A stretch of 64,000 bases of DNA from Cyanophora paradoxa CCMP329 (lineage: Eukaryota > Plantae > Glaucophyta): positions 62,001 to 126,000 of the forward strand of contig QPMI01000138.1 in the NCBI GenBank assembly GCA_004431415.1, in the 5' to 3' direction. The position numbers and the translations under genes are program-made. A model generated the notes under the pieces. That model did not search any database, was not told the DNA's origin, and was given only the letters and a program-made list of their open reading frames with translations. Below are positions 504 to 53,409 of this stretch, one piece after another. Every line of letters starts with the position of its first letter. The stretch's first letter is position 1.

Positions 504-1389
504 CACCTGCTCGTAGCTTTGGCTCCCCTGCAATCTCAAGCTTCTTGAGCTCTCGATACTGCCGGCTTTGACCGCTGTATTTTTTTGTTTCGATCAAACC
601 CTCACGTCTCAATCGTCTCTGCTGTCGCATTTGCACTTCTTCTTTTTCGATTCGTGTTTGAGGTGCAAGCTCACGCGGTTGACGTATTTCCGATGGTTTA
701 ACACGTCTAGAAATTTCCACACCCTGTTTTGTAACGAGTCGAACACGGTTCTTGTCTGCGCCAGCAACTATGTACGTCTCCTTGCTTGGCTTTGTGGTTC
801 CCTTCGCAAAAACGCTTGGCTTCGGCTCCAGGACTTGCACTTCGGTCCCTGTGCGCGGTATGTTCGAATTGTCTCGTTCAATATCGTTCTGTCGCTGTCT
901 AACTTGATGCAGCTGCTCGGCTACCTGTGTATTTTCCCGCATCCACTTTGGTGAGTGCTCCCCGCCGAAAGAGCTGTGGGCTGTTTCATTGTACGCCTTG
1001 ACAATTGCCGGCAAACGTGAGAGGAAATGCGGGGAGCCACGAGCTTCTGTATCAGTCTGAATCAGTGCTCGCAATGTCCTCGCGAACCTGTCGATAATTC
1101 CCAGCTTGGAGCCTTTTGAAATGTGATCATCCTTAGCCACATCAGTGTGCATTTTCAACGAGTTCTCTTCAGCCATTTCCCGAATTGCTGCTGTGTTGAA
1201 GCCGTTGTCTCCTGAAAAGCCCCATATTCCAGGTAGCTGCTCGATCATTTTTGGAAGCTGCTTAAAAGTCTCGAGCTTACGGACCACAGCGAAACGGGTT
1301 GCAATCTCGACCGCTGCGAACAGGCGAAATCTCCCAATGAACAGCACGTCAATTTGCCACGCACCGGGTGGCGCAGTAATCTGGTACAT
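439..1389 (-). CDS. Retroviral-like (rve, c-integrase) DDE/D integrase of Polinton type
   Basis: ITAPPGAWQIDVLF, AVEIATRFAVV, FSGDNG, LGIIDRFARTLR and LPAIVKAYNETAHSS match the rve core. C-terminal region has VFAKG...SKETYIV. Confidence 0.88.
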   Translation of the reverse strand: MYQITAPPGAWQIDVLFIGRFRLFAAVEIATRFAVVRKLETFKQLPKMIEQLPGIWGFSGDNGFNTAAIREMAEENSLKMHTDVAKDDHISKGSKLGIIDRFARTLRALIQTDTEARGSPHFLSRLPAIVKAYNETAHSSFGGEHSPKWMRENTQVAEQLHQVRQRQNDIERDNSNIPRTGTEVQVLEPKPSVFAKGTTKPSKETYIVAGADKNRVRLVTKQGVEISRRVKPSEIRQPRELAPQTRIEKEEVQMRQQRRLRREGLIETKKYSGQSRQYRELKKLEIAGEPKLRAGAKAASPRALQKLRSSRGIYAQ

Positions 1390-1398
1390 CTTTGTAAA

Positions 1399-4300
1399 TC
1401 AGGCGCGATTTTTATAATGTCCAATCGCTCGGGTGTTGATCCCGTCAGTCTCGAGGAAGCGTTTGGTATCAAGGGGATGTAGAGCCTGACGCGAGGTTCG
1501 TTGTAAATAAATCTCATGTAGTTTCGAGCGGAAACCGAGAATTCCTTTGATGTCATACGATTGCTTTTCTCCCTCTTTAGGGCAGACGCACCGGAAGAAT
1601 ACATCCCTTGTGAGTCTGTTGTAGTACGTCTTTTGAATACCCTTGCATACCTGCTTGTCCGTGGAATCTTCACGCGAATAATAGTAAGATTTCGGCCGGT
1701 TAGCGATCCACTCTGTCATTTGCAGACCATGGAGCTCATCCTTGAATAATCCGGAGTTTTCCCCATCGATCGTAGAGCTCGAACCTCATCGGCTGTCATG
1801 CCATCGAAGAATCGATGTGTCTCTGGGTAGTCGCTAACATCCAGCTCATGCTTGATTGAGCGTAAATCAGCATAGATATCTTTGGTGCGAACCTCGATGA
1901 TGAGACTGTCAGTATCCGTACCTAATAGTGTCAGCCGCTGGCCCCAAAGCAGCTTGAGCACCTGGTAGTAAAAGCGGTACATGTGCAGCTTGGAAAGTTC
2001 GAGGATGACGAACCCGCAGTAGATAGGTTTGTTCAGATTGTACTCACTTTTGCGCTTGGAAACGAATACAAGGTTCTCTTCGTACATCACCACCTGCTTC
2101 AACCGATTTGGTTCGCTGTTGATCTTCACCAGACGGTCTCCCGAAGTCACAAGCTCTGAAAAGCAGTGCTTTCTCACGTTCTCCATTGTTTTGCCAAAGA
2201 CACTGTTGTTCATCAACTTGTAAAGGTCCTTCTGGTATGTGAACTGCGATTCTTTACGTTTTTGAGTATTGAGATCTATGAAACGCCCTAGCCATGCGCT
2301 TTGTTCGTACGATAGGATCCGATGGATGTTGGTTACTATCATTCCCAGTGACGTATAGAGCTGAAGCAAGCGTCCATCAACAACATAATTCTTTTTTGGA
2401 AGCAGATTTGGAACGAGCTTTGGAGTTCGTTCAACTGAGGTAAGCTTCTCGTCGTTAATCATATCCTGTTGTCGCTTTGATAGGTGTTCCTTGGACACAC
2501 ACATCCGTTCAGGGGCCAGCGGATAGTCTGAGAACTCGTCATGGAGATGCTCAGGCATGTACATATCGACTTCGAGAGCATAGCCACGAGCTCCATCCGC
2601 GTCAAGGCTTGCAACGTACTGCATTACATCAACGTCTTGATCTAGTTTATCCCAGCGGAAATCTCCTGTGGGTAGCTTGCGCTTCATTGCGACGCCGTAC
2701 AAGTTGTTTGCATCGAGGTACATGAGCCACGATTCCTTGTGTGTTCGGTAGTAGTTAGAAATGCATGTAGACTGTGAGACTGTAGGCTCAACAGCGTGGG
2801 TGTACTTGTTGAACTTTATGCTCAAATATTTGTTCTCAGCTCGTGCGTAGCGTTTTGAGATCATTGAGATTCCGCCCCTGATCCCGGATTCTATAAATCT
2901 GTGCATATCCTGCTGCCCCTCGTGAAAGAGCTCGAGCTTCACTCCAGTGTGCTTAAGTGCTGCCTGCCAAGCAAATCCGGCGATGACATAAAATAGCTAG
3001 GATCTAGGCCATACGTTTCAATACACGTATCACGATAGTTTTCAAACACGTCAGCTAGTAACGCGATATCTGTCATCATATACTCCATTGTATAGCCTGA
3101 TAGCGTTCTGCAGCCGAGCTCTCGCCAAACAGCCTTCGCATGTGCGTACTCATCTTTCGTGCATTTCTTCTGTTTAAGCTGATTTTTGAAATAACGACGT
3201 GCAGGCAGTTTAGACTCCTGAAAGCGAGCCCAGCTCGTCATGTAGTCATAAGGGTAAATCCCTTTGCTAGTCATCAGCTTGAACCGAGTCTCGTCCAGAT
3301 ACAGCGAGCGCGTGATCTTCTTCTTCTCCGCGGGCAGAGCCTTTGCAAGGTCGTCCAAGCTCGCATTCAAGTGCTGAGCCGAGTCCCGTAGAACGTAAAT
3401 TCCATACTTGAACTGCGAAATTCGCTCGCTATTCTGGAAGACCTGATCGAATTTTATCGAAAGGAGACTCTGCGGGCGGAGCCGGCGTTCGAGCCCCTTC
3501 TTCGCCTTCTTTTTCTGCTCTGGGGTCATCTCACGCCCACCGTACTTGCTTTCAAACTCGCTTTCGACATGCGCTTGAAACTCCTTCCAAGCTGCTAAAC
3601 GACGGTTATAGCCAGATGCTAGAGCACGTACGAGCAGGTGGAAGTCAAATCCTCGACCGTTGTGCCAGAATAATGGAACAGCAGCTGATTTCGCGCGGCG
3701 TCGATTGCAAGCTCTGCAGGCAGCCCCGAAATATCGGCCAGATTCGTGGCAGTGATCACGGTGCTTGTCTTTCGCATCCTTGAACGTGTTCTTGCACATG
3801 TAGCACTCGGTCGTCGTTTGAAAACGCTGCTCCTCTTCCTGAGTAATCTGGATTGGTGCAGTCTCTCGCAAAAGCTCTCGGAATTGTGGTTCCATTTCGT
3901 CCAACCATTGCACGAACTTCTCAGTGCAGTCCTCGCTCTCCGAACCCATGTATTTGAAACAAAACTGTTCACCTTTTGAAGATACAACCAGACAGCCGAC
4001 TGAAGCAATCACATGCACACCTTTCTTTTCGGTCTTTCCACTAATGCAGGGAATTGGCATTGTAATCGTCTCTGAATCAGCATATCCGACCAGACGTTGC
4101 CGGATTGAGTACTCAAAGTTAATAAACTTCTGGATATGTGCTCCTTTCTCCGGCAGAACATCTCTTGCGTGTTCATCCCGATCAAGGCAACGGTCATATT
4201 TCAGATGATTTTCAAATGCTTGATCTGAGCTAAAACCGACCTGGCAGGCTAAGCAATAGTGCTTTGCATTTGATTCGTTCTTTCGGAACAGTCGTGAGAC

Positions 4301-5455
4301 GCTCTTAATCCAGAGGTAATGCCCGACATCGTTTCCCTCCCCAGCCGGCACATACAGTATTGGGATTGCGTCTCTCGCAGCACTGATATGGATTGGTATG
4401 ATATCCTGCTTATCTAGAGCAGTTGTATAAACGCAGAGCTTGACGTTATTTGCTTGCTCGAATTTGGTGAACATCCTCGAGTCAAGCGGGGTCGGATATG
4501 TAAGCATTGAGCAGTCCAGCGATGTCTCGTGCTGGCGGTAGTTCCCTGCATGCCGAGAATCAACACCTTCGCCCAATGGATTGCGAGCAGCAAGGACTGC
4601 GTATTTAAAGCACTCGTTGTTCGGTGCATTTATATTGATAAGCGCGTGCTTGTCTGAGAGCCACTTTGGCAGTACAAAGCCTCGGCCACGGCCACCAATC
4701 CTGCGGAAATAGCGCACAGTTTTAAAGACCAGATACACCCACGTGTCAAATACTGAGGAATCCCTGCTTTTCTCTGCCGAGATCATGTCTAATTCTTCGA
4801 GCTGTGAACGCAAGGCCGCCTCAATGCTTGTCCCTGGCTCGATGCGATCGAAACGACGATGTTCAATAACGATAGCGATCGTAGAATCTGTCTCTGGCTT
4901 TCTGTAGACACCCAATCCAGAGATTTGTAGTGCAATGCCCATTCTTACCGCCTCTGCAAGATTTACCTGGGCGCTTACGAATGATATAGCATTCTGTTTG
5001 AACTGCTCAGAATTCTCGAAGCGAGCTTGCATTGATGTTACGCGGCCAGAACCGCGAGGCAATTGGTATTTCCACTCCGCATATCGCCCGTCAAGCGCTG
5101 TTGTAGTATTTCCGTCATTGATTTGAACATCATTTCCACCGTCATCCTCAGGCAGCTCGGCAAAGCCACGGACGATCTCTGCCTGCACCTCTGCGATCGC
5201 CAGCTCTAGTCGACGACCTGACACAGGACGCGCTGGCCTAGGAAGTCTTGCAAGTTCGTTCAAAAGTGAAGCGTACTTTTCCAAAGTTGCAAACCGTGTT
5301 CTCGACCCTTGTGCTGAAATTCTAATCAATTTATTTTTGAAAGCTCCATGTATGACGCGTCGATTATACAATGAAATCGCGAGCGCTTCGATCTGGTCTT
5401 TGATTCTGGCCAACCGGAAGCGCCGAGTCGCTGCATTATTTTGGGTAACGTCCAT
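1399..5455 (-). pseudogene. polB: Protein-primed family B DNA polymerase (pPolB), read as three ORFs (2939-5455, 1716-2942, 1399-1719) joined by two -1 frameshifts
   Basis: Exo motifs YADSET, WHNGRGFDFH, YMMTDIALL; KGIYPY; endonuclease VII-like zinc insert CYMC...RDHCHESGRYFGAACRACN; IRGG; YLDANNLYG; KLMNNSVFGK; GTDTDS; RPKSY. The N-terminal NECFKYAV...GHYLWI resembles the OTU-like protease module of pPolBs. Confidence 0.93.
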
Positions 5456-12877: not shown

Positions 12878-13184
12878 GCCAGCTTAAACTGCTGGGAAAA
12901 ACTCGACTCACGCGACAGTCGCGCGGCTCGCGCCACGCCGTGACGTCGACGGCGCCGCGTGGCGGCGGCCACGGCCGGGCCAGCGCGCGCCGCAGCGCGC
13001 CGCTGCGCGCGCGGCGCTACCGGTACCCGCGGTGACTCACTCACTGTGACACGTCAACCTGAGTGAAGGAAAATCCGGTACGTCCGATCGGATCGAACTG
13101 GTAGTAGTAGTCTGGTACTGGCGAAGGCCGAGGGGTACCGGATCGTCGATCGGATCGATTCGATTTTAATTTGTTTTATAGAAG

Positions 13185-15080
13185 TTTTTTTTTGGTGAAT
13201 TACCGGCCACGTGCACAGTCTCTAGACACCAGCACTGCGGGGGCTGCCCAGGGGGCATAAAGACAAAAAAGCAAAATAACTAAGACAAGAGCACGAAGAA
13301 AGATAAGACAAAGAGCCAAAATCGACAATAAAAAAGGAAAGACACAGAGCTCGAGACAGATCGATAGCGAGAAGAGACGATAAATCGAGCAGATCTAGGG
13401 ACAGAGGATAACTGACACGAAGAAGAGCCAGAGCTAGAGATACCATCAATATCAGAAGGAATTACATCACTAAGAAGCGGGGGACAAAATTGAGAAAGAT
13501 AAATAACAGGAAGAAGACAAGTAAGAGGAACAACAAGACGACATGGAGGCGGAGGCGAAGCAGGACGATGCGAAAGGGCAGAGCTACGGCACGAGGTCGA
13601 GGAGGACACAGGAGGCGGAGCAGGCGGATCAACAGCAGGCAAAAGGACAGTCAAAGGAATCACTAAAGCCGGCCGGGGTCGAGGCGGGCAATCGAACTGC
13701 AAACGACGGCGAACAACAGGTCGAGCACGAGGACTATAGCTAGTATTGAAACTAACTCTAGCATCAACACTACGATCAGAATCCGAACCAGACCGAACTA
13801 AACTAGAAGACGAAGAAGTACGCCGGCGCCGGCGGGATACGATCGCGACCAGCGAAGCAGAAGACGAAGGCAAAGGCGGCAGTCCGGTATCAAGAACAAA
13901 GGCCGGAGGGTCCGGCCCGGCAAACCGCCGGGGGAAGTAGAAGGAGCCGCAGGCTCGGCAAGCCGGCGACGGGTACGACCACGAGTCCGGGAGGAGATCG
14001 GGGAAGCCGGTCCCGGAGCTGAGGGCCCAGGAGCAGAGCCAGGAGAAGGTAAGCCCGGCGAGAAATCTGACCCGGAGCCGGAACCCAGCGAACGACGACG
14101 ACGAAGAGGCCCCCGAGGAGCCACGACGGGGGAGCTACCGAGCAAAGTACTGACAGCCGGCGCCGAACACGGCGGCGGAGGTACCCCGCAGACAGTGGCA
14201 GGCGGAGAGTCCAGGGTCGATCGAGAGATCCGCCGACGGGAATGCGGCGGGGGCCGACGAGACGGAAGAGGTGAGGAGGGGGCCAAGGAAGGGTCGGAGG
14301 CAGGGGAAGGGCCGCGAGCAGGTGACGGGGATCGCTGCCGGCGCCGAAGAGAGGGCAGCGAAGCAGGAGAAAGGTCGGGTGGCGCCGGATCAGATGACAC
14401 GGAGGTCATGGCCATGGGCGGCGCAGAGAGAGACGAGCTCGAGGGCGCAAGGGCCCGACGATCGCGAGGGTGCCGGCGGCGAATCTCACGAGCGCCAGGA
14501 AGCGGGATAGGACCCGCAGATGGGACCCGAGGCGCCGAAGGGGGAGCAGGGAGCCGGAATGACGGGGAGACCGAAAAGAGGACAGTCTCGCCAACACTCG
14601 GAAGCGGGGCAGAGGCCGAGGACCCGGAGCTCGAGGGGGGGAGGGAGGGCGGAGGAGGAGAGAGAAGGCGGCTATTCGAAGGGTATGGAGAATCGAGAGC
14701 GGAGGCGAGGGAGGCCGAAGTGATGGCGAGCTCTGGAGGCGAGGGGGCCTGCAAGCGGATCCGGGAAAGTGGATGCAGACGCAAAGAGACCGGGGACGTA
14801 GAGGCGGGAGGGGCATGCAAAAAGATAGTGCCGCCCAGCGTCACAGTTGCAGAAGCGGGGGCAAGAAGGATGGGCTGAAGAGGGGGCTGAACCAGGAGGA
14901 CGTCAGAAAGAGGGCCTCGCAGGGGCGGAAGTGGAGGAGCAAGGGGAAGAGGTAAGAAGGGGTATGGAGCTGCAAGATGACCAGGGACCCGCCGGGGAAC
15001 AGGCAAGTGAAGAGGCCCCGTGACAGCAAGTTGTAAGGAGGGAGGAGGCAGAGGCGGGGCCAGAGGGCCAAGGAGCACAG
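13185..15080 (-). mobile_element. 5'-truncated LINE copy A (3' ~1.9 kb with poly-A tail)
   Basis: High-identity reverse complement of ~50810-52679, ending in ...GGCCGGTAATTCACC-polyA. No TSD seen. Confidence 0.9.
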
Positions 15081-30089: not shown

Positions 30090-30945
30090 TCACTTATGAT
30101 CATGATCATGATCAGCAGTCGGCCGCCGGGCGGCGGAGCGCGCGCGGTGCCGCTCGAAGACCTCATCGAGCGCGGCCTCGAGCCCCGCGTTCGTGCCGCG
30201 CAGGCCCGCAACGACCGCTTGCGCCCACGCGAAGTACTCCTCCACCCGTTGCGCGCTCCACCCGACGGGCGTCGTCCTCAGCAAGTCCCTCAGGTTGTAG
30301 AGCTTGTCCCCGAGCTTGACCTGCGCGTCGGTCAGCGCCGGGCGAGTCCGGGGGCCGGGCGGGCCAGCGCACCAGCTTCGCGCCCTCGCTGCAGTGCGGG
30401 GCGTGCAGGACCTGCAGCTGCTTCCGCTCCTCCTTCTTGAGGCTCTTGTCGTCGCTGCCAAGGCGCCGGGTCATGAGCTCGAGACAATGGCGGCTGCAGG
30501 GGCGAGGGAGAACGCGAGCCGCGCGAACCTTACTTCCAGAACCACGTCCTTCACCCTCTTGCCGAACTTCTCCTCGAGCTGTAAACGTAGCACTGCGGTG
30601 TCGAATGCAGATCTAGATCTGCACAGGAACTGCGGGTGGCACCTCTTCTGCGGTCGTCTGGGTGTCTTCAATCGTGTCGTGGAGGACGGCTGCTTGCAGG
30701 ACTTCAAGGTCCGTCACGCCTCCGATAGAGGACAGGAGGTGCGCCACGCCGATCGGGTGGTTGATGTACGGCGTGCCCTCTGCGCCCCGCGCTCGCATGC
30801 GCACGTTGTTTGCCTGGCAAGAACGGCTCGCACCTGCGTCCTTGCGCCGCTGTTTCGAGTGCTTCGCTGCCGCGAACACGAGCGCGTCCAGCAGTGCGTT
30901 CAGCTGGCCGCCACCCGCGTCTATATTCGCGGCTGCAGAAGCCAT
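30090..30945 (-). CDS. HDDC3: MESH1/HDDC3 HD-domain (p)ppGpp hydrolase / NADPH phosphatase, 5 exons
   Basis: [77 protein letters not shown]. Confidence 0.95.
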
Positions 30946-31410
30946 CGGTCACGTATGCTCTCCGTACGCTACGCTGGCCCGGCCCGGCCGGCGCCGATGG
31001 CTGGGCCGATTCGTGAGGCTGCAGCTGGCAGTTGAAGGGCTTGAGGGCCCGCGTGCGGGTCGAAGCTGGCCTCAAAAGCGATCACTAAAAGGTGAACAAG
31101 CCGCTGTGATGGCAGGAGCCCTGGTTCGAGCTTCGCTTGCGAGAGAACGCACTGCGGCACGGGCCTGGTCGACGTCGCGGCAGCTATCGCCGCTAGCGTT
31201 GGAGCGTCTGGCGCGTGCGGCGTTTGAAGTACGTATACTATAGCTAGTGAGCGTGTGAATTGCGTGTACCCCCTTTATTAGGTTACAGGGGGAAGCCTAC
31301 TAATTCACATCCGATTCTAGGTTTCTATATAGCTAGGTTTCGATGTCACATTAAAAAAATGTCACATAAGCGCCCAGCGTCTTCCCACGTGCACGCGGGT
31401 GCTGCGATTT

Positions 31411-32643
31411 CTACGAGACTGCAAGGAACTTGGGCGTCTTGGGCGTGAGCCCCGCTGGCCGCTCGGCCCCGTGGATGGGGCTGGGGAACTCCAGGGCGGC
31501 GCTCCCCGCGGGGCGGCTGCTGACGGGGGGCCGGCTGCTGGCCGACCCGAGCCCATCGTGCGCGGCGGCGGCGGCGGCGTGCGTGTGGAGGAAGCCCATC
31601 AGAGCGTCGAACCGGGCGTGGATGGGGGGCAGCTCGGCCCCGGGTACGCCCACCACCGTGTCCTGCAGCTTTAGCGCCACCGTCAACTGCGTGGCGTACC
31701 CCGTCAGCCTCAAGAGGGGGGGGGGGGGGGGTGGAAGAGGAGTGAGGCGGGGTACCTGGACGCGCTGGCCGTTGGCGCGGCGTCGGGAGGAGGGGGCGGA
31801 GAGGGGGCCCGAGGCGTGGGCCGGCAGGCCGCGGGCGCCGGCCGGCCCGACCGGCCGAGGCTCGAGCACCGCCACCTGCAGCGTCACCGTCCCCGCGTGC
31901 ATCGCCTGCGAACGAAGGGCGGGGGGTGAGACGGAGGCGAGGAGGGGGGAAGAGGCGGAGGGGGGTACGCACGTTGAGGGCGCGGGCGAGGGTCTCGTGG
32001 AGGTGGAGGCGGAACTGGATGGGGTCGACGCGGGCCCAGACGGGGCGGGCCCCCGCCGCGCCGCGCCCCTGGGCGCCCTCGAGGGCAACGCGGAGGGCGA
32101 CCTGGCGGCGGAGGGCCTTGGCGGCGGCGGCGAGGAAGGTGCCGCAGATGAGGGCGCGCAGGTCGCAGCAGCCGCGCGGCGGCCGCTCGCCCGCGAAGAC
32201 CTCGAGCGAGGCGGCCCCGCTGATGGCCGTCTGGGCGACCCAGGCCGAGGCCGGGGCCGGGGGCGCCGGCCCGTGCAGCGAGGGCGCCGAGCGCTGCCGC
32301 GCCCGCATGCCCAAGGCCGAGGCGGGCGCGGGCGGCGTCGAGTGGAAGCTGCCGGGGCTCCAGAGGCCGCTGTGCGCCGCCTGCTGCGCCGCCAGCCGCC
32401 CCGCGAGCTTGCGCCCGAGCGTCAGGGCCGCCGTCGAGCCGAGCAGGTCCGACGTCGACGTCTGCGGGCGCAGCTGCCCCGCGCTCGCCGCGCGCGAGAG
32501 GGCCCCCGGCGACTCGGGGGCCGCCTCGTTGCCGGCCGTGCGCGGCCGCTCGCCGCCGGCGCCGCCCTCGGGCCCCCGGCTGGCGCTGTGGAGCGGCCCG
32601 TGCGGCCGCGCGCTCGGCATCCCCGTGGGCGCGGCCGCCGCGC

Positions 32644-32677
<34 letters not shown>

Positions 32678-35600
32678 GGGGTCGACGGTCACCGAGTTGC
32701 CGCGCGATCCGGCGGGGCCCCGCCTCCGCCCCGCCGCGTCTGCAGGAGACCTCGTCAGCGCCGGCCGACGGGCGCGGGCGCGCGGAAAACGCAAAACAGA
32801 ACCACGGAAGCGCGCACCGGCCAGAGCGTAGAAGCCGGAGCCGTAGACGAACTTGTGGAGGCTGTCGGTGGTGCCGTCGTTCTCGCCGCGGGCGCCCCAC
32901 GCGCGCACCCGCTCGTCGATCCGCAGGTCAACCAGGCCCTGCCAACCGGCCGGCCGGCGCTCAGCGATCGGATCCGGCGGCGCGGCGCCGGGCGGGGCGG
33001 CGCCGGGCGGGCGGGGCGCGCACCACGGTGCGCTGGCGGCCGCGCATGGGGACCAGGGGCCGGATCTTGCCGGGGGTATGGTCCCCTTGGACGTCCCCGC
33101 GAGGTACCCCGGGCGGCGGGCCTCGCCGCGGCTGCGGACCGAGGGACGCCCCAGGCGGAGCCGGGCGGCGGGCCCTCCGAGGCGCTCGTCTGAGGCCGCT
33201 GCAGGACGGGCTCGGCCGTGTGCGGGCGCGGGGGCGCGCCGCCGGCGCCGCCGGGAGCGGCGGCGGGGACGCCGGGCGAGGGCGGGCGGAGGCTGGCGAG
33301 GGAGGCGGCGCCGCCGTAGGCGACGCCGGCGAGGAGCGGGTGGAGGCTCCCCGCCGATGGCGCCGCCGAGAGCGGCCGGCCGAAGAGCTCCTCCAGCGGC
33401 ACGCTCGCGTCCAGCTCCGGGAACGGGGCCGGGGCCGGGGCCGCCGGGGGCGCGTGCGAGCCGTGCGACGAGCCGTGGGGCGAGCCGGCGCCCTCGGGGG
33501 CGTGGAGGACCCAGGGGGCGAGCTGCGCGGCGACCCGCCGCATGGAGTAGGCCCCCGCCGAGTCGAACGAGGGGGCGGCGGGGGCCGGGGCGGGGGGCGG
33601 GAGGATGCGGTGGAGGGCGGCGAGGGTGGCGAACTCGCCGGGGTCGGCGGGGCGCGGGAAGGGCGTCGCGACGAGCTCGAGGACCTTCAGGAGGCGGCGG
33701 AGGGCGGCGCCCTGCTCGCCCCGCGGCGCCTCGCGCGCCGCCGCCGCGTGCTTGGCCGCCAGCGCGTCCTTGATGCGCGCCTCGGCCTCCTTGCGGCCCT
33801 CCGCCCCGTCGTGGAAGAGCAGCAGGGCCGCCCCCGGGCCGGCCGGGGCCGCGTAGCAGTGGGCCTGCAGGCGGGGCCCGCCCCGGCGCGGGGGCGGCAG
33901 CGAGACGGGGACGTGCGCGAGCTCCGCCGGCCCCGCCGCGATGCGGTCGAGCTGGCGGAAGAGGGGCCCGTTCGCCTCGTCGCCCACCACCTCGCCCAGC
34001 GCCTTGCCCGTCACGTCCGCCGAGCCTCGGTGGAGCAGCAGGGCGGCCGCCCCGTTGGCGCCGAGGATGCGGGGCGGCTGCCCCTGCGCCGCGGAGACGG
34101 CGAGGGCGGGGAGGGTCGACTCCTCCAGCGCCTCCCCCACGTCCTCCAGGGCCTCCAGGCCCACCCGCACGCTCCCGTCCGAGAAGGCGGCCCCCGAGCC
34201 GCCCGCCTCCGACCCGCCCGCCTCCGACCCCGCGCCCCCCTCCTCCTCCGCCTCCCCCTCCTCGCCCTCGGCCAGGGGCCTCGCCGCCGGCTCCTCCTCC
34301 TCCTCCTCGCCCTCTTCGAGGAGCAGGGGCGCCCCGGCGTCGGAGACCCAGAACTCGCCGCCGACGCCGTACCAGGGCGCCGCCGCGATGCGCTCCAGCG
34401 CCAGCACGGCGGCCGCCTGCGAGACCATGGCGCCCAGCAGCTTGGCGCCCTGCAGGTCGGCCCCGGACCACGGCTCGCCCGCCACGCTCGAGCCGGTGGA
34501 GCCGGCGGCGGCCGCCAGCGCCGCGAGGTTGATCGCGATGTTGTTGCCGCGCCCGACGGAGGCGGCCTGCTGCCCGCGGCCGCGCCCCGCGGCGCGCTCC
34601 GTGCGCTTCGTGCGGAACCAGAGGGCGAAGGAGGAGAGGGCCGGGTCGAGGGGGACGGCGAGCGTGCCGTGCGCGCAGTCGCCGAGCTGGGCGCGCCGGG
34701 GGTACGCCGAGTCGGCGACGGCGTCCGAGTACCAGACCTCGGGGAGGGGGCCGTGCCGCCCGACGCCCCCGCCCCGCGTCGTCCCGCCCATCGTCGCGTG
34801 CCCCGCGAGGGCCAGCGAGGCCCCGCCGCCCCCGCCCTGCGCCCCGCCCTGCCGCCCGCCTCAGCCTCAGCCGGGGAAGCCTCGAAGGCACGGAATGAAG
34901 AAGCAGAGTGGGGACCTGGCGCTCCTTGCCGGCGCCCTCGGCGATGTGCTCCGCGACGAAGCGGGCGAGCTCGCGCACCTCCTCGTCCCGCGGCGTCGCC
35001 CCCCGCACCGACTGCCCCGCACCCGCCCCGCCCCGCCTCAGCGCACCCGCGAAGGGCGGGGCGGGGCGGGGCGGGGCCCGCCCGGGCGCACGAGGCGGCC
35101 GGCGAAGAGGATGGCGCAGCCAGTGCAGGGCACGACGTCCGCCATCGACGTCGGTGAGAGGTCCGGGTCCCCTGCGAGCCGCGGCCCCGCGCTCAAAGGG
35201 CGGAGGAGGGAGGGGAGTAGGCGGGCGGGGCGGGGCGGCGGGGCCGGACCGACGAGGGTGCGCCCGAACTCGCGGCTCGCGACGGCGCCGTCGTACAGGC
35301 GCTCCAGCTGCGCGGGGCGTGGCGCGAGTCAGGCGGGGCGGAATCCGGGCGGGATCGCGGGCGGGGGCGCCTGGAGGGTGCGGTGCTTGGCCATCTCCTC
35401 CTCGTGCGCCTGCAGCCTGCGCGCGCGCGCGAGGTCAGCCGCCGCGCCCGGCGCCGCGGGGCCGCCCCGGCCCCGGCCCCGCCCCGGCGCACCGGGCGGT
35501 GAGCATGGAGGCAAGCGTGTCGAGGGACTCCAGGAGCAGCGCCCGGTCCTCCCGCCCCACGAACCGCGGCTCCCTGCACGGGGGAGGAGGAGATAAGGCG

Positions 35601-37006
35601 GGGCGGGGCGGGGCGGGGCGGGCGGCGGGCGGACGAAGAGTGGCAGGAGATGACCCCCCAGAGCTTGTCCCGCTGCAGCACCGCGATCGAGAGGCACGCC
35701 GTCGCCCCGCTGTACCCCAGGTGCGACACTGGGGGGGAGTGAGCCGGGATGCTGGAGCCTAGCGGCCCGGGATGCCAGAGCGCACGGAGGGCGGGCGGGG
35801 GCGAGCGGAGGTACGCCGACGACATGTCCAGCGTCTGCATCGTGCTCGGGCTGCAGGGGGAGGAAGCGAGTGAGGGGGGTGGGGGTACGGGAGCAACGGA
35901 GTTCGGAGGGGGGGTACGCACTTGACGGCGGGTACGATGGGGCTGGGGTCGGCGCCGGCGTCCATAACGAAGTGCACGGGCCGCTTCATGAAGAACGCCT
36001 GGAGCGCCTTCATGTCTGTGGGGGTACAGCACAAGTTAACGATAGGAGCAAGGGGTAGGGGTACGCGGGCGAGCGGGCGGACCCTTCTCGGGGAGCTGGA
36101 GGGGGGTAGACTGCGTCAGATGCACCTCCCGCCCGTCCGGCCCGAGCCGGTCGATGACCTCCTCGATGATCTGCGGAAGTAGGAGGAGGAAAGAGCGTCA
36201 GGGGGTACCCGGAAGCGCGGGGTGGTGAAACGGCGGCGGACCTTGGCGCTGGTGGTGCTGTACTCCTCGATGATGCCCTTCTCGAAGCCGGTGGTGCGCA
36301 TGAGGAGCTGCAGGAGCCCGCGGCAGAACTCCTTGAGGGACCGCGCTGCCTCCACCTCGCCTGGGGGCGCAGAGGGCTCGGGCAGGGCCGGGGCGGAGCA
36401 GTGGCGGGGCGGGGAGCGGCGGGGCGGCCGGCGGGACGGGCGCACGGGCGGCGTCGAGGAGGGCGGGGGTGAAGCCGGCCTTCTCGAAGGTCGGATACAC
36501 CTCCGGCTCGACCTCGAGCACCAGGCCGCCCTGCACGGTGTGGAGCGAGCCGACGAAGAAGCTCAGGTCCTCCGCCTTGATGCTCCCGTGGCCCGTCCGC
36601 GCCCCGCTGAGCGCTCCAGCGCGCACGTCGAACTTAAGCCTGCCCCGCGCGTAAGATGGCGCCGCCTGCGGTGCGCGCGGCGGGCGGCGGGCGGCACCGG
36701 AGCATGCGGCCCTCCTCGTCGATGTTCGAGCTCGCCGAGACGAGGCGCTGGATGGACGAGAAGTCCAGGATGTTCTTGATGCTCTGGCCCACCAGCTCGC
36801 TCGGGCCCCAGCCCAGCACGCCCAGCACCGAGTCCGAGCACTGGATGATGGTAAAGTCGACCTGCTGGAGGATCAGGGGACGGGCGCTTCGCCGGCGCGG
36901 AGGCTAGGCTCGCCTGGCTGCGAAGCACGAAGAGCACGCCATAGTTCTGGATGGAGGGGCGGCCCGCGGCCGCCTTGGCCACAGTCCCGGCGGCCGACTT
37001 GCTCAT
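31411..37006 (-). CDS. Phytochrome-related protein PAS-GAF-PHY-PAS-degenerate histidine-kinase-related domain, chromophore residues absent
   Basis: PAS: SIQNYGVLF, IIQCSDSVLGVLG, HTVQGGLVLEVEP. GAF: TTGFEK, NPSTMQTLDMSSAYLRS, KLWGVISCH, EPRFV. PHY: GATPRDEEVRELARFV, YSDAVADSAYP..LGDCAHG, LWFR, EPWSGAD. Second PAS. HATPase-like VWARVDPIQFR...LQDTVVGVP. Confidence 0.88.
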
Positions 37007-38076: not shown

Positions 38077-41000
38077 CTAGAGCCTAGAGGGCGGCGGCCG
38101 GCTCCATCCCGGCCATGGCCCGGTCCGCCGCCTCTGCCCGCGAGAAGGCCGCCTGCGCCCCTTCTCCCGCGTCCGCCCGCCGCTCCTGCCGTCCGGGATC
38201 AGACTGGGGTTCACAGGAGCGGGTCCGAGGCGGGGCGCACCGCGTGGCGCCAGGCCTTGCGCGCCGCCCGCTCGCCCCGGTGCGCCTCCCGCTGCGCCCG
38301 CCGCGCCTCCCGCCGCTCCTGCCACCGATCCCGAGGCGTGAGCGGGCGGCGCCGGCGGGACCGCGCCGCGGCTAAGATGTGCGGCTCGGAGGCTCACCCG
38401 CGCGGTCATGCCGTCCTTCTCGCCGGCCGGGGCCGGGGCCGAGGAGGCGCCCTCGGCGGACGACGAGGCGGCGGCCGGGGCGGCCTCGGCGGCGCCGACG
38501 ACCACCCAGCCCTCGTCCTCCTCCTTGATCGCCCCCTCGCCCTCCTTGCCCTCCTCCTCGCTATCCTCCTCGCTATCCTCCTCCTCCTCCTCCTCCTCCT
38601 CGTCCTCGTCCTCGGGGGGCACGACGCGCTGCAGGAGCAGCTCCTCGATCTCCTCTTGCGTCTGCGGCGGCGGCGCGGGGTACGGTCAGCCGGGCCGGGC
38701 CGAGAAACGGGGCGGAGTCTGGCCAGGCCGGCGCGGGGCACCGGGCGCAGGGCCTCCGGGAGGCGCGCGTCGGTCGCCCAGTCGAACGTCGCGTCGGTCA
38801 CCTGGGCGGCCACCTTAGACTCTGCGAAGAAGAGAGAGGCCGGCGGGGGCGGACGATGGAGAAGAGGGCGTCGGGGGCGGGGCAGGGGAGGCCGGCGCGG
38901 GCGAAGAACTCGGAGGTGTGCGCGCAGTCGGCCCGCAGCAGCGCCGACGCCTCCGGGTGCTCCAGGTCCACACCCTAAGGGAAGGCTAAGACAAGGATAA
39001 GAGAAGCTGAGAGGGAGGCGGACCGTGGCGAGGTCGATGACCCAGACGAGGCCGCCCTCTCCGTAGAGCAGGTTGTACTCCGAGAAGTCCCCTGCGGGGT
39101 TACGGGGTTGGGCGCCGGGAGCGGGGGGAGATGCGGCCTAATTATAAAGGAGGGAAAGCGGCTTCGTCCCCGCCCCGGGCTTTGCCCCGCCCCATCCCGG
39201 CTCGGAGCGGGGCGGGGGGGCACCGTGGACGAGGTTGGCGGAGAAGTAGAGGCGGCGGAGGAGGTCCGCGCACTGCCGCCACGCCCGCCCCTGCCAGAGC
39301 GCCCTCGGCGCGGGCCGAGCCGAGGCGGGGCTTCAGCGCACGGCCTCGGCCTGGGAGGCGAACTCGACGTCCTTGAGCCGCGGCGCCGGCCTGCGGCGGC
39401 TCAGGGGGAGGGGAGGGGGGGGGGGGGGGGGGGGGGTAGCCGACCAGCCGGCCTTGCCGATGAAGGACATGAGGAGGACGTGCTGCCGGAGCGCCAGCGG
39501 CTCCGGGCACCGCACCCCCGCCCGGTACAGCCTGCGCCGCCGCCGCCGTCGGAGGGATGGGAGGGATGTGAGGGAGGGAAGGGGGTGGAGGGGTACCGGA
39601 TGAGGTTCCGCATCTCCTTCTCAGCCCACTTGATAACCTTGACCGACCGTTAGCATCGATGGGCGCAAGTCGAATGAATTTGATTACCATCTTGCGCTGG
39701 TTGTGCTTGTGGTACCCGTGCCGGAACCGGTAGTCGTCCGCGATGTACTGCGGCGAAAGGCCTCGGCGGGGTACACGAATCGCTCGGGTTCGGGGCGCCC
39801 GCACCTTGTCGCGGTCGCGCCACTCGAGGACGCGGGTCTTGAACACTGCGCGGGTGTCGGCCGCGGCGGGGCCGAAGAAGAAGAAATTTAAAGGGGCGCC
39901 GCGGGGGCCCGAACCCTTGACGGCGACCTCGCGCCCCTCGGGGTCCGTCGCGTGGAAGACGGCGGCCTCCTTCCCCGTCGCCACCGCGCCGTTCACCTGC
40001 CCGCCTTGTATTAGATCTGTGCTCTGTGTGTATGAAATCCCCGCGGACCTCGGAGAGGCGGCCGTCGTTGATGGCGGCGAGTAGCAGCAGGCGGGTCCCC
40101 TGGTCCATAACGCCCTCCGTCGTCGACCGGTCCTTCTCCGTCCGCCGCTGGTTCGCTTCCTGCGGGGGGGGCGTCAGCGTCGGGATGCAGCGCGTGCAGC
40201 TGGGCCTCTCGCGCGCCTGCTTGCGGAGGGTCTTCTTGATGGAGGCGTGGATCTCCTTCGTGAAGGCCGTGCTGTTGTCCGCCGACCGGTCGTCGCTCCG
40301 CACCGTTGGCTCGTACCGGTTCGAGTTCCGCCCCGCCACCCGCCAGTCTGGGCGCCGGCGGAGTTAGCCGCGCGGGGAGGTTCCGGAGGGGGGGCGAGGG
40401 CGCGGGGGGTACCGTAGATCAGGTTTCCGGGGTCGACGAGGTCCTTCTCGAGCTCCTCGTCCCCCACGTCCTCCTCCCCCGCCTCTACGGCCGCCCCGGA
40501 CCCCGCCGCGTCGGCCGCCCGGCGCCGGTTGCGCCGCCGCTGGCGCCGGCCCTCCCCCGGCGCGGCCGACGGCTTGGCCGCCGCCGGCGCCGCCGCCGGC
40601 TTGGGCGGGAGCCGCCAGCCAGCGTCCTCCTCCTCCTCCTCGTCTTCACCGCCGCCCTCCTTCGCGCGGGAGCGGGGGCTCGATGCCTCGCCCTCGCTCG
40701 CGCTGTCGAAGTCGAGAATCTCCTTGTACCTGCGGGGATAATCAGCGGGGGCGTCGGGGGATTCTCGGGGCGGGAGCGCGCTTCTGGTAGAGTCCCTCGA
40801 GGTCGCCGCGCTGGCCGGGCGCGTGCGCGGGCCCGTGGGAGCGCGCTGTGCGGGCTGCACGCATCTCCTCGCGCTGCAGCTCCTCCGCCATGCGCCGATC
40901 GGCGTCCTGTGCATTCAGCGCCGCCTGCGCCTCCGCCAACAGAGCGCTGGGCGCCGACGCCTGCGCATGCGGACGAGGAGAGGGATCAGGGACACGCGCA

Positions 41001-47599: not shown

Positions 47600-49239
47600 G
47601 GGGGCGCACGCGCAGCTCCGCCTCCGGGTCTCCGGCGTAGGCCGCGTGGGCGGAGGCCGGCTCAGGCCGGTAGCTGTAGCCGTGCACGCGCAGGCCGGCG
47701 GCGCGGGCGGCGCGAAGGATCCAGCCGCCCTCGGGGCCGCCCCGCAGTCCCAGCGCCCGCAGCAGGCGCCAGAGGGGCGGCGCCCAGGCTGCCAGCGCCG
47801 GCGGCGGCCGCGTCAGCCAGTCCTGTACGGAAGAGCTCAGCGACGCGAACCGGATGGGCGGGGGGGCGGGACAGGTTTGGATGCCTTGCGGAGGCCGAGG
47901 GCGTGGGCGCAGGGGCGGAGGGCGGCGAGGGCGGCCGGGTCGGCGAGGCGCGCGGGGGCTGCCGGGTCCTCCTCTTTAAGGAAGAGCACCCCCGCGGGGC
48001 GCAGCGGCCAGCCCGCCCTGCGCGTGCGCGGCGGGGCTCAGAGACAAAGGGAAAGGAGGGGGGAGAAGGAAGACGGGGGTACGTGGCGTTGTAGAAGCGG
48101 CAGAGCTGGGCGGGGTCGGTGCTCTGAAGGAGGACGGGTACGGATTCGCTGGGGAGGCCCAGCCGCCGAAGCTCCTGCGGGGGTACAGCTCAGAAGAGGA
48201 AACAGAATAAGCGAGGTGGGGGGTACGCGCACGGAGAGGAGTGCGGCCTCGGCGGCGGGGAGGGCGGCGGGGTCCGGGACGGGCTTGAGCTCGGGGAAGA
48301 GGCCGACGGGCCGGCCGCGGCGCGCGGCGGCGGCGGCGGCGGCGGCGGCGACATCGTCGAGGGCGGCGAGGGGCAGGAGGCCGTCGAAGCGATCGGAGCG
48401 GCCCGCGACGGGCTGCCGCGCCCGCGGCGCCCGGAACTCTTCGAGCTTCAGGTCGCTCTGCGCATGCGGCCCAGCGTCGGCGGCGGCTCAGTATCAGCCC
48501 CTGAGGCGGCGGAGATCCAGGGACCGAGGAGAGCGGATGCCGCAGTGCATATGAGAGGAGCGCACCACGAACACGCCGGTCACGTTGCGGCGCCAGGGCG
48601 GGTGGTAGCGCGCGACCCGGAGCTCAGGAAAGCTGCGCCCGCCCCGCGCGCGCGCGGCGCCGGCCCCGCGTCGGCTTCGGCGGGCTGCTGCGGGCGCCAG
48701 CGCGGGGGGCGGGTTGCGGCGCACAGCGCGTCGGCGTTCGTCGACTCTGAGACGGTCGGCCGGTTCGTGGAAACGAATGCGCCGTCTGCGGCCGGCGCGC
48801 GTCAGCGGCGCGGAGCGGCGGCGCGGGGCCCATCCGGTCCGCGCCGGCGGTGAGGGCTCGAGGAAGTCGGCCCCGAGCAGCGCCGCCAGCCTGCGCGCCG
48901 TGAGCGCCTCCGCAGATCGCCGCGGCGCTCGCGCGCCGCGCGGCGGGCGCGCACTCGAACGCAGCGACTGTGTGCTCAGGAAGGTAGGCCGCGGCGCCGC
49001 TGCGCACGCCGCACGGCCGCTCGGCATTCGGATTAGAGGCATTCGGATCATGCGCTGATGGCGCGCGCGCACCGGTGGGCGGAAACAGCGACGCGGCGCA
49101 GGCCGAGCGCGCGATGCCGGGAGGCCAGGGTCAATCGGGGGCGGACCGGGAGCCGCCAGCAGCGCGCCCGCGCACGCAGCAACGACGGCGACCGCTGCAG
49201 CGAGCCTGCTGCAGGCGCGCGGCCCGGGCCCGCATCCAT
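47600..49239 (-). pseudogene. Glycerophosphodiester phosphodiesterase (GlpQ/GDPD)-like gene, degenerate
   Basis: Exon peptides AVSAHR-GAAAYLPEHTVAAFE, LAALLGADFLEP, DGAFVSTN (second catalytic His missing), RFDGLLPLAALDDV, PVGLFPELKP. The signal-peptide-like frame lacks an in-frame ATG. The C-terminal half is poorly recognisable. Confidence 0.65.
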
Positions 49240-49328
49240 ATCGGCAAGCCGCTCATGATCATATCGCGTACCCGCCCCTCAAGTTTTCCTTGAAAAACGG
49301 ATCGATTGAAAAAAACAACTTCCAATTT

Positions 49329-49359
49329 TTTTTTTTGGTGAATTACCGGCCACAGTCTC
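49329..49359 (-). mobile_element. Ultra-short LINE 3' end (copy C, ~23 bp + poly-A)
   Basis: polyT-GGTGAATTACCGGCCACAGTCTC is the exact reverse complement of the LINE 3' end. TCCAATTT lies at 49321-49328 and 49358-49365. Confidence 0.75.
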
Positions 49360-49381
49360 CAATTTCCAAGTTCCTAATTGC

Positions 49382-52300
49382 CCTCCATTCCTTTTTTCCC
49401 TCGTCTGTGCTCCGCGCTCCCGGCAGCATGGCGCCAGGTCCTTGAGGCCCCTGCCCCGCCACCTCAGCATCTCTGGTGGTCTGGACCGGACGCCTCGGTT
49501 GCTCTCCTTCGGGGCCCGAGCGGTACTTTTGTCGCCTTCCCCGTTCGCGATAACCAGATAATTCCACGGGTGCTGGATTACGTGCCGCGTGTTCCTTGCC
49601 GCCCTGCGGCTTCCCACCCTGTGGGCCTATCCTCTAATTCAATTCTGTCTCGTTTGCTTCCGCTGCACGTTTGCTTTAGCGCTGTCTTTCTCTCTCTACG
49701 TCGCGGAACCCTGCCCGGTCTTTTTATTCTAGGAGCAGGCCCCTCTGCCTTTCTTTCTCTTGATAATCTTGCGTTCACATTTGCTCGTATGCTCCCTCTC
49801 CGCCTCTCATCTGTTCGTCGCTTCTACTGCCTTGAGGTCCAGCGGCTTCGCGATGTGTCCAGCCACGCTCAGATGCCCGATGCTAAGTGGGGGTTTCCCG
49901 GCGCCTTGTCTCCGTCCCGTCTTCCTCATCTTGTCGTCCTTCAGTGTTTCCCGATGCTTTGGATCGATGCTCTTTACCGTTTGCATTTCAAATTGTATCG
50001 TTTGGGCGAGCAACAGTCGCCTCGCCGTCGTTTCTGTCGGGTTTGTAATGACGGATCTGCTCGCTCTCACGCGCACGTTTTCTCTGAGTGCCCGCTTTCT
50101 CGTTCGTTCTGGGATTTCATTCGTGAGCGCCTGAATTTCTGGGCTTCTACTCTTCCACCGGAGGAGCGTGAAGAGGTCGAAGTGCCTGACCTCTCTCTCT
50201 TCCACATCCTCTCGGTTCCGGATTTATCTGGGCCCATTTTGCGCAGTAAAGTTAACCCCGCCTTCTGCCTTCGCTCACTTGGAGCGATCCTTGCTGGCGT
50301 ATTTTCCATCCAACAGGTTGCTCGCGCTCGGTGCGATCTTGAGGAGGTTGACATTGATGCACCTTCTTACAACCGCGCCGCGCTTGTTGCCGCCTGGGAC
50401 AGAAATATGTCGTACCTAGAGTTCACTCTTCCGCAGGCTTCGGCCTTGTTGGAGGAGCGGCGCGCTCGCTTGGCTGTTGCTGACGCTGATGATCAGGATG
50501 CCTCGGATGCTGAGTCTGGTGCCGGTTCTCATCGTTCTAGTTCAAGCTCTGATTCTGACTCGCCCGACCCTCCTTCTTCGGGCGGTGCTGACAACCTCGT
50601 CTCTTCGCGTGACATCGATTCTGTCCTCCGGAATCCTGCGGAGTTCGCCGTTCGTGGGAATGTCCCGTTGGGGATCCCTGGTGGTCGCCCGCCTCCTGCG
50701 CCGTCCCCTCCTGCTCTGGCCCCTGTAGTGACCCATGGGCCCGTTCCTATTCCTGCTCTCGCTGCCCCTCTCGACGCTCCTTTTCCCCCATTCCCTGCGG
50801 TCCCGATCCCTGTGCTCCTTGGCCCGCTGGCCCCGCCTCTACCTCCTCCCTCCTTACAACTTGCTGTCACGGGGCCTCTTCACTTGCCTGTTCCCCGGCA
50901 GGTCCCTGGTCATCTTGCAGCTCCGTACCCCTTCTTACCTCTTCCCCTTGCTCCTCCACTTCCGCCCCCGCGTGGCCCTCTTTCTGACGTCCTCCTGGTT
51001 CAGCCCCCTCTTCAGCCCATCCTTCTTGCCCCCGCTTCTGCAACTGTGACGCCGGGCGGCACTATCTTTTTGCATGCCCCTCCCGCCACTACGCCCCCGG
51101 TCTCTTTGCGTCTGCATCCACTTTCCCGGGTCCGCTTGCAGGCCCCCTCGCCTCCAGAGCTCGCCATCACTTCGGCCTCCCTCGCCTCCGCTCTCGATTC
51201 TCCATACCCTTCGAATAGCCGCCTTCTCTCTCCTCCTCCGCCCTCCCTCCCCCCCTCGAGCTCCGGGTCCTCGGCCTCTGCCCTGCTTCCGAGTGTTGGC
51301 GAGACTGTCCTCTTTTCGGTCTCCCCGTCATTCCGACTCCCTGCTCCCCCTTCGGCGCCTCGGGTCCCATCTGCGGGTCCTATCCCGCTTCCTGGCGCTC
51401 GTGAGATTCGCCGCCGGCGCCCTCGTCGGGCCCTTGCGCCCTCGAGCTCGTCTCTCTCTGCGCCGCCCATGACCCCCGTGTCATCTGATCCGGCGCCACC
51501 TGACCTTTCTCCTGCTTCGCTGCCCTCTCTTCGGCGCCGGCAGCGATCCCCGTCACCTGCTCGCGGCCCTTCCCCTGCGTCCGGATCCGACCCTTCCTCG
51601 GCTCCCTCCTCGCCTCTTCCGCCTCGTAGGCCTCCGCCGCGTTCCCGTCGGCGGATCTCTCGATCGACCCTGGACTCTCCGCCTGCCACTGTCTGTGGGG
51701 TACCTCCGCCGCCGTGTTCGGCGCCGGCTGTCAGTACTTTGCTCGGTAGCTCCCCATCGTGGCTCCTCGGGGGCCTCTTCGTCGTCGTCGTTCGCTGGGT
51801 TCCGGCTCCGGGTCAGATTTCTCGCCGGGCTTACCTTCTCCTGGCTCTGCTCCTGGGCCCTCAGCTCCGGGACCGGCTTCCCCGATCTCCTCCCGGACTC
51901 GTGGTCGTACCCGTCGCCGGCTTGCCGAGCCTACGTCTCCTTCTACTTCCCTCCGGCGGTTTGCCGGGCCGGACCCTCCGGCCTTTGTTCTTGATACCGG
52001 ACCGCCGCCTTTGCCTTCGTCTTCTGCTTCGCTGGTCGTATCCCGCCGGCGCCGGCGTACTTCGTCTTATAGTTTAGTTCGGTCTAGTTCGGATTCTGAT
52101 CGTAGTGTTGATGCTAGAGTTAGTTTCAATACTAGCTATAGTCCTCGTGCTCGACCTGTTGTTCGCCGTCGTTTGCAGTTCGACTGCCCGTCTCGACCCG
52201 GTCGGCTTTAGTGATTCCTTTGACTGTCCTTTTGCCTGCTCTTGATCCGCCTGCTCCGCCTCCTGTGTCCTCCTCGACCTTGTGCCGTAGCTCTGCCCTT

Positions 52301-52679
52301 TCGCGTCGTCCTGCTTCGCCTCCGCCTCCGCGTCGTCTTGTTGTTCCTCTTACTTGTCTGCTTCCTGTTATTTATCTTTCTCAAATTTGTCCTCCGCTTC
52401 TTAGTGATGTAATTCCTTCCGATATTGATGGTATCTCTAGCTCTGGCTCTTCTTTGTGTCAGTCATCCTCTGTCCCTAGATCTGCTCGATTTCTCGTCTC
52501 TTCTCGATCTGTCTCGAGCTCTGTGTCTTTTCTTTTTTATTGTCGTTTTTGGCTCTTTGTCTTATCTTTCTTCGTGCTCTTGTCTTAGTTATTTTGCTTT
52601 TTTGTCTTTAGGCCCCCTGGGCAGCCCCCGCAGTGCTGGTGTCTAGAGACTGTGGCCGGTAATTCACCAAAAAAAAAAA
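49382..52679 (+). mobile_element. 5'-truncated LINE (L1/Tx1-like) copy B carrying the ORF2 C-terminus
   Basis: zf-RVT-type motif CRVCNDGSARSHAHVFSECPLSRSFW in ORF 49378-52077. Poly-A tail. 14-bp TSD AAGTTCCTAATTGC at 49368-49381 and 52680-52693. RT and endonuclease domains are absent. Confidence 0.92.
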
Positions 52680-53409
52680 AAGTTCCTAATTGCTAACGTA
52701 TAACCAATAGCACACCAGACTTCTGCAAGGATCCCGGGTTCGGTTCCTGCTGTTTCCGCTACGTTGTACTTCGAATCCCTGTGATTCCCGATACCGTGAC
52801 TTGTATCCTCGTTGTGTACTACGAGTGGGCACGCCCACCGTAGATCTTTAAAAAATATATTCTGCAAGGATCCAAATTAATTATATTTATAAACCAATAG
52901 CCAATCAGACTCCTGCAAGTTCCTAGGCCTAAGCTTAAGTTCCCGCCTAACCAATGGCAAACCAGACTGCTGCGCGCACGAACGTCCCAAAAGTTGCCAA
53001 AACCGGAATTGCCGTGGCGATATTATTATTTTGCCGCGATAAATTGCCGCCGTGCCGGATCCAGCTGCAGCTGCAGCTACTACTAGGCTAGCTAGATGCT
53101 GCTCTACCCGGTGTCGCGGACTCGCGGGCGAGTGCCACCGTGGCACGTGCACGGTACCGGTGCGCTTCGAAATTAAATTCGTCGCCGAGTCGACGTCTGC
53201 CGCGGTCTGCGCAGTGCGCACAGTGCGCATGCGCAGTGCCTCACTGAGTCACTGTGCCTGCAGGCTGCAGCTGGCCGCGGGCGGCGCCGCGTCCGAGTCC
53301 GACCGTCGGACGGTCGGCGAGTCGACGGCGACTCGGCGCCGGCGCCGGGCGCCGCCGGCCCGCCCGGCCCCGCCGCCGGCGCGTCGACGTCGATCCGACC
53401 GTCGGACGG

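Follow-up and report, generated by a model that had tools for sequence, protein, structure and literature searches.

A transcribed and spliced Cyanophora paradoxa phytochrome, likely blind, that lacks the residues for bilin attachment and autophosphorylation

Within a 64,000-nucleotide stretch of the genome of the glaucophyte alga Cyanophora paradoxa (contig QPMI01000138.1; the whole stretch is called the window here), one minus-strand gene of the phytochrome superfamily is transcribed, spliced and open-framed, while its product has lost the residues needed to attach bilin covalently, to relay a signal through the tongue, and to autophosphorylate on histidine. The gene is the public model tig00000545_g1989 (g1989 below). 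A window open reading frame holding exons 15 and 16, used as a query, returned a single protein, P0001, which is EukProt EP00741 Cyanophora paradoxa tig00000545_g1989.t1. On the best reading, g1989 combines a pseudo-photoreceptor with a pseudokinase in the layout PAS-GAF-PHY-PAS-histidine kinase. More specifically, and at what we consider an even chance, it would be a copy of a phytochrome kinase of the glaucophyte type that has diverged and now works as a scaffold or modulator, blind to light and without catalytic activity.

THE PHOTOSENSORY MODULE

The protein's N-terminal portion carries PAS_2, GAF and PHY matches that all lie above the Pfam cut-off, giving the tridomain arrangement of phytochromes. 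All are on the minus strand, as follows.

36507..36955, minus strand: PAS domain, residues 18-130, exons 1-3 (Pfam PAS_2, E 2e-7; structure model)
35404..36449, minus strand: GAF domain, residues 150-335, exons 4-10 (Pfam GAF, E 1.7e-6)
34381..35373, minus strand: PHY domain, residues 346-580, exons 11-13 and the beginning of exon 14; 34741-34924 is a Gly-rich insert (Pfam PHY, E 1.8e-10; structure model)
34474..34608, minus strand: degenerate PHY tongue without WAG or PRxSF, predicted local distance difference test (pLDDT) below 50 (alignment, structure model)

Among PDB entries, bacteriophytochromes and Cph1-type proteins come closest (E 4e-29). AlphaFold2, supplied with a 92-row alignment, builds the module with a pLDDT of 80, a predicted template modelling score of 0.78 and a continuous GAF-PHY helix, confidence being low in the tongue (below 50) and in the Gly-rich insert. 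The predicted structure matches known phytochrome modules (Foldseek E 4e-32 to Cph1; Z about 28). By homology and predicted fold, g1989 is a member of the phytochrome superfamily.

LOSS OF PIGMENT ATTACHMENT, POCKET, AND TONGUE

What, then, has been lost? The GAF segment of g1989, LRSPPPALLSH, lines up gap-free with LRSVSPCHL in relatives that carry the Cys, an alignment that bears out the first-pass annotation (made from the letters of the window alone) in replacing the bilin-attaching Cys by Ala, the neighboring His by Leu, and a Tyr by His. Residue numbers and roles in the reference proteins (Asp207, Arg254, His260, Tyr263, His290 and others) are those we take to hold from work on the Deinococcus phytochrome and Cph1. 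The positions that matter most are these.

35790..35792, minus strand: Ala271 at the site of the GAF Cys that attaches bilin, followed by Leu272 in place of His (RNA contigs, alignment)
36266..36268, minus strand: Glu182 in place of conserved Tyr176 (alignment)
35805..35807, minus strand: Arg266, the retained equivalent of Arg254 (alignment)
35640-35642, minus strand: His302, the retained equivalent of His290 (alignment)

In the pocket, His260 has become Leu272, Tyr263 has become His275, Arg222 has become His234, and Tyr176 has become Glu182; the equivalents of Tyr216 and Ser272 are lost as well. The motif changes DIP to DMK and DRVMxY to EKGIIE, both proposed earlier, are also found in the alignment, as is the absence of PRxSF from the tongue, where WAG has gone too and only 3 of 18 conserved columns are kept. 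A photoactive phytochrome would be expected to have the bilin-attaching Cys, the full set of pocket residues and a WAG/PRxSF tongue, none of which g1989 has. Measured against 91 intact bacterial phytochromes, it keeps 38 of 90 highly conserved columns (the intact proteins average 85, with a minimum of 73), and the loss falls more heavily on bilin and tongue positions, with 4 of 20 kept, versus 34 of 70 at other conserved positions (p about 0.04). Even so, the original description of a protein with "no chromophore pocket" overstates the case. Asp220, Arg266 and His302 (Asp207, Arg254 and His290) persist, and of the set formed by DIP, His260, Tyr176, Tyr263, Arg254 and His290 the equivalents of Asp, Arg254 and His290 are what remains. 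Judged by its residues, the pocket is degraded rather than gone.

Could a Cys be supplied from elsewhere? The bacteriophytochrome-type Cys near the N terminus is missing, as first noted: a stop in frame comes just ahead of the ATG, and the 5' end is covered by RNA and unspliced, which rules out a longer N terminus that would provide it. Intron 7 lies two codons past the Cys-equivalent position. An alternative exon restoring the Cys-His pair, which would have overturned the original proposal, was looked for, and no in-frame GT/GC-AG choice around intron 7 yields one; nor did a six-frame motif scan of the window find a Cys-His. With these residues missing, bilin attachment at either canonical Cys site would be impossible. 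That g1989 is "blind" is likely, yet unproven, because recombinant phytochromes lacking the Cys can embed bilin and show altered photochemistry (PMC8707292).

Two other functions for the remodeled pocket have to be weighed. One is that g1989 is still a photoreceptor, its bilin being bound noncovalently or through a noncanonical Cys of the GAF sheet, either Cys284 or Cys301. Cys284 does occupy the Ser272-equivalent position in the pocket, a nonconserved attachment site was raised as a possibility for the charophyte protein PHYX1 by Li et al. (PMC4525182), and Cys-less phyB kept weak light responses in plants (PMC8707292). Against this, Cys301 is the ordinary conserved Cys of a CHH motif, no splice variant restores the canonical Cys-His, and the losses take in His260, Tyr176, the Ile-Pro of DIP and the entire tongue, so that we regard residual photoreception as very improbable.

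The other is a sensor of something besides light, in which the remodeled GAF cavity holds bilin, heme or another ligand noncovalently, or Cys pairs report the redox state, the signal being passed to partners by conformation. We think this unlikely, though clearly less so than residual photoreception. It would fit the three retained pocket residues, the replacement of Tyr263 by His, and the embedding of bilin by Cys-less recombinant proteins just mentioned. There are also Cys residues that might serve: a CxxC (Cys381/Cys384) in PHY, at 35116-35127, and, where the ATPase relic described below begins, three more (Cys1264/1265/1272). Going by the title of a 2007 paper by Vuillet et al. (listed in PMC6879726), one bacteriophytochrome, BphP4 of Rhodopseudomonas palustris, changed from a light to a redox sensor; it is reported to keep an active kinase that is controlled by the redox state of its Cys. 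BphP4 would be a phytochrome that gave up light sensing, from which g1989 differs in having a dead kinase. Speaking against such a sensor are the lost equivalents of His260, Tyr176, Arg222, Tyr216 and Ser272, the three prolines ahead of the pocket helix, the absence of both the tongue and a catalytic output, and the occurrence of Cys381 at the same place in an ordinary bacterial phytochrome.

THE OUTPUT REGION

Downstream of PHY, the protein continues through a linker and a second PAS domain into a region where the kinase would be expected.

34171..34335, minus strand: acidic, Gly-rich linker, residues 596-650 (sequence)
33796..34158, minus strand: second PAS domain, residues 655-775 (Pfam PAS_4, E 5e-4 over residues 684-744, just under the cut-off)
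33601..33795, minus strand: helical-looking segment past the PAS, residues 776-840, at the place expected for DHp, with no H-box detected (sequence)
32210..33600, minus strand: low-complexity region, residues 841-1250, 59% Pro/Gly/Ala/Ser, including exon 15 and part of exon 16 (sequence)
31474..32200, minus strand: relic HATPase_c (CA) domain, residues 1254-1450, exons 16-18, with no receiver domain after it (profile alignment)
31982..31984, minus strand: Arg1326, which replaces the Mg/ATP-binding Asn of the N box (profile alignment)

Some 410 residues of low complexity therefore separate the helical-looking segment from the C-terminal domain. Searches of Pfam and NCBIfam found no kinase match, and the C terminus went unrecognized by a classical BphP kinase profile. 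A hybrid-kinase ATPase profile does align collinearly over the N, G1, F and G2 boxes, scoring 33.6 versus 24.1 for the best of 230 shuffles, and language-model features of the C terminus point to HATPase_c (0.94). In that alignment both N-box Asn residues are substituted (Glu1322, Arg1326) and the G1 DxGxG reads DTVVG, just as the initial description had it. Its failure to see an H-box is borne out by the shuffle test, in which no placement rose above shuffles; candidate hidden H-boxes at residues 790-820 and 1183-1197 scored no better. We infer inactivity because the N-box Asn, DxGxG and the H-box are missing, and from established histidine-kinase chemistry; kinase activity is very unlikely.

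Within the low-complexity region lies a more hydrophobic island (32818-33140, residues about 990-1075) without a family match. A second GAF relic suspected by eye at residues 860-1075 was unsupported on checking.

GENE MODEL, TRANSCRIPTION, AND READING FRAME

The first reading of the sequence had asked for an RNA-based gene model, and transcription and splicing are both visible in contigs of sequencing runs X1, X4 and X5, from two studies. The model is as follows.

31411..37006, minus strand: whole gene, 18 exons, about 1470 amino acids (RNA contigs and window model)
36914..37006, minus strand: exon 1, with the ATG and a short N terminus without the bacteriophytochrome Cys, followed by a GC-AG intron (RNA contigs, model)
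36698-36861, minus strand: exon 2 (gene model)
36446-36639, minus strand: exon 3 (gene model)
36242-36360, minus strand: exon 4 (gene model)
36083-36170, minus strand: exon 5 (gene model)
35922-36015, minus strand: exon 6 (gene model)
35786-35850, minus strand: exon 7 (gene model)
35729..35785, minus strand: intron 7, 57 nucleotides, in frame and stop-free (spliced out in RNA contigs)
35635-35728, minus strand: exon 8 (gene model)
35493-35573, minus strand: exon 9 (gene model)
35371-35416, minus strand: exon 10 (gene model)
35250-35307, minus strand: exon 11 (gene model)
35092-35171, minus strand: exon 12 (gene model)
34916-35011, minus strand: exon 13 (gene model)
33024..34848, minus strand: exon 14, where the window is one G short behind 33071 and one G short behind 33142 (RNA contigs carry both)
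32818-32938, minus strand: exon 15 (gene model)
31973-32739, minus strand: exon 16 (gene model)
31756-31905, minus strand: exon 17 (gene model)
31411-31686, minus strand: exon 18 (gene model)
31310..31410, minus strand: 3' untranslated region, as far as the RNA contigs reach (RNA contigs)

The 17 introns measure 52 to 85 nucleotides each, 15 of them being GT-AG and two GC-AG (36862-36913, directly visible as an RNA joint, and 35308-35370). Introns 1 to 7, including 35729-35785, are skipped exactly in contigs of X1, X4 and X5, and contigs of run X11 read through them. Because of this difference the X1, X4 and X5 contigs behave as spliced RNA; the library type of these runs is not on record, and their RNA status is read from the intron skipping. 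For introns 8 to 13 there is a fit of length (703 nucleotides in a contig versus 702 modeled), and introns 14 to 17 agree with contig edges and joints. The support comes from partial contigs, no single one of which spans the full mRNA. Runs X16 to X23, which bear the same species label, hold at most 3% of the gene's words, whether through diverged strains, low expression or absence.

The earlier statement that the exons are open with canonical splice sites stands for the splice sites, all of which are GT-AG or GC-AG, and needs correcting for the frame. Translated as assembled with the true splice sites, the window runs into a stop at codon 1036. An extra G behind 33071 and another behind 33142, present in all three RNA runs, give 1470 open codons, and a further net three bases near 32717-32725, present in X11 as well as in RNA, preserve the frame. 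The missing bases at these three places (about five, in G/C tracts) look like assembly slips. The public model is identical to the window model except for two introns, one laid over the frame slip and the other a 48-nucleotide intron in the second PAS that the RNA contigs read through.

Is the gene maintained or decaying? The marks of a pseudogene, namely a broken frame, lost splicing or a missing transcript, were not found: the frame break is absent from the RNA contigs of two studies, which rules out a frameshifted pseudogene, and the spliced contigs answer the possibility, raised at the outset, that there is no expression. No stop occurs in 1470 codons, where neutral drift as large as the divergence observed would be expected to bring roughly 10 to 40, a rough estimate, as the parent is not known, based on about 3% of nonsynonymous changes here making a stop. 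GC content at fourfold sites is 0.94 to 0.99 in every coding region versus 0.80 in introns and 0.56 to 0.60 in the flanks. Because the frame is open after heavy divergence and fourfold-site GC is so high, a decayed pseudogene is unlikely. The reading frame is maintained, which does not point to a particular function.

A LIGHT-BLIND SCAFFOLD OR MODULATOR?

How might such a protein work? The PAS-GAF-PHY shell, together with its long GAF-PHY pairing helix, would still fold, and would neither attach pigment nor pass on a signal from light. Carrying a dead kinase fold as well, the protein could act as a light-independent binding partner, scaffold or brake in the alga's phytochrome and two-component network, its putative binding surfaces being the shell, the long disordered region and the second PAS. 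This scaffold or modulator role is supported by the spliced RNA from two studies and by 1470 open codons and 17 intact introns persisting despite the retention of just 38 of 90 conserved columns. The missing stops, the fourfold-site GC, the lower retention at bilin and tongue positions and the predicted phytochrome fold speak for it too.

Several points weigh against it. (i) The dimerizing DHp helix is unrecognizable, which weakens the idea of a simple heterodimer. (ii) The AlphaFold2 model depends on aligned relatives that are intact and is no proof that the g1989 sequence folds; from the single sequence, pLDDT reaches only 36. (iii) The bias of loss toward pocket positions is nonsignificant (p 0.10-0.17) once the Gly, Pro, Ala and Arg columns are dropped as a control for GC-rich codons. 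(iv) No orthologue was found among 5.8 billion or 1.8 billion proteins in word-indexed searches, a full HMMER search and a contig look-up, with exons or the public model as queries, whose length and word limits mean that absence is not shown; they returned g1989's own public model and two weak bacterial-type matches. (v) The branch is very long, at 4.8 versus a median of 0.8, in a quick tree of bacterial and viral rows, where it is unplaced.

The last two points also fit relaxed selection, in which case g1989 would be a dispensable duplicate, transcribed and translated, drifting and without a present role. Several Gly/Ala/Pro insertions in PHY, the linker and CA, and decay in every functional module, are what such drift might leave. 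The lack of any stop or true frameshift in 1470 codons, though more than half of the conserved columns have changed, argues the other way, as do the coding-type GC bias and the intact splice sites; we consider a dispensable duplicate doubtful. Similarly doubtful is the extension of the scaffold or modulator role to a conserved class of glaucophyte light-blind, kinase-dead pseudo-phytochromes, whose binding to free bilin or to photoactive phytochromes would adjust an expanded photoreceptor family, much as pseudokinases tune kinases.

KNOWN RELATIVES AND PRECEDENTS

The nearest known system is that of the glaucophyte phytochrome sensors (GPS), which have PAS-GAF-PHY, a single PAS and a kinase-type domain in which the kinase His is kept (PMC4525182); one of them, CparGPS1, has a blue/far-red photocycle (PMC12420706). 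CparGPS1 comes from the same species and shares the domain layout of g1989, which likewise has one PAS (the PAS_4 just under the cut-off) between PHY and the kinase region. The conserved phospho-His is lacking. Unlike GPS, g1989 is without the GAF Cys, the tongue, the H-box, the N-box Asn and a receiver, and it has the low-complexity insert of about 410 amino acids. The likeness to GPS rests on the published layout, the tree rows being bacterial and viral with no eukaryotic references. Two large viral contigs encode phytochrome-like proteins (L170:3456-6206 and L171:3474-6242) that keep the N-terminal Cys, DIP and PRxSF.

Cys-less phytochromes and kinase-dead outputs have each been published singly; g1989 combines both and is unusually far degraded. 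PHYX1 lacks all known bilin-binding Cys and may not bind bilin; it keeps the kinase His and sometimes a receiver, and it forms a clade across the Zygnematales and Coleochaetales (PMC4525182). Both proteins are eukaryotic and Cys-less, and the likeness goes no further than the loss of the Cys, since in g1989 the kinase is lost too and an orthologue was not found. Canonical phytochromes of streptophytes have an output derived from a histidine kinase that has lost its phospho-His (PMC4422448, PMC4525182). They differ from g1989 in keeping the chromophore Cys and the photoswitch; their PAS domains number two, and their kinase-related domain is compact. In the part of the key phytochrome literature that was covered, no paper on g1989 was found, and the main text of the genome paper is without phytochromes.

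At present, g1989 is one expressed, heavily diverged gene with no orthologue found. If it does modulate phytochromes or report bilin levels, it would be an example of a pseudo-photoreceptor in an early-branching alga of the plant lineage, and it would hint at the role of Cys-less phytochromes such as PHYX1. The protein is, besides, a natural control that separates residues holding the fold from residues serving the pigment.

SURROUNDINGS IN THE WINDOW

Just downstream of g1989 lies an HD-domain gene (30093-30945, minus strand; Pfam HD_4, E 1.8e-8) that looks MESH1-like by eye. On the other side, a spliced gene at about 39100-40340 on the minus strand has pieces that, on visual inspection, resemble a RIO1-type kinase; a Pfam scan of one of them found no match. 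The start of the window (439-5455, minus strand) holds intronless open reading frames of lower GC. Strong and opposite strand skews occur at 13000-15000 and 49000-53000 (AT skew about +0.5 and -0.5, respectively), probably reflecting simple or tandem repeats.

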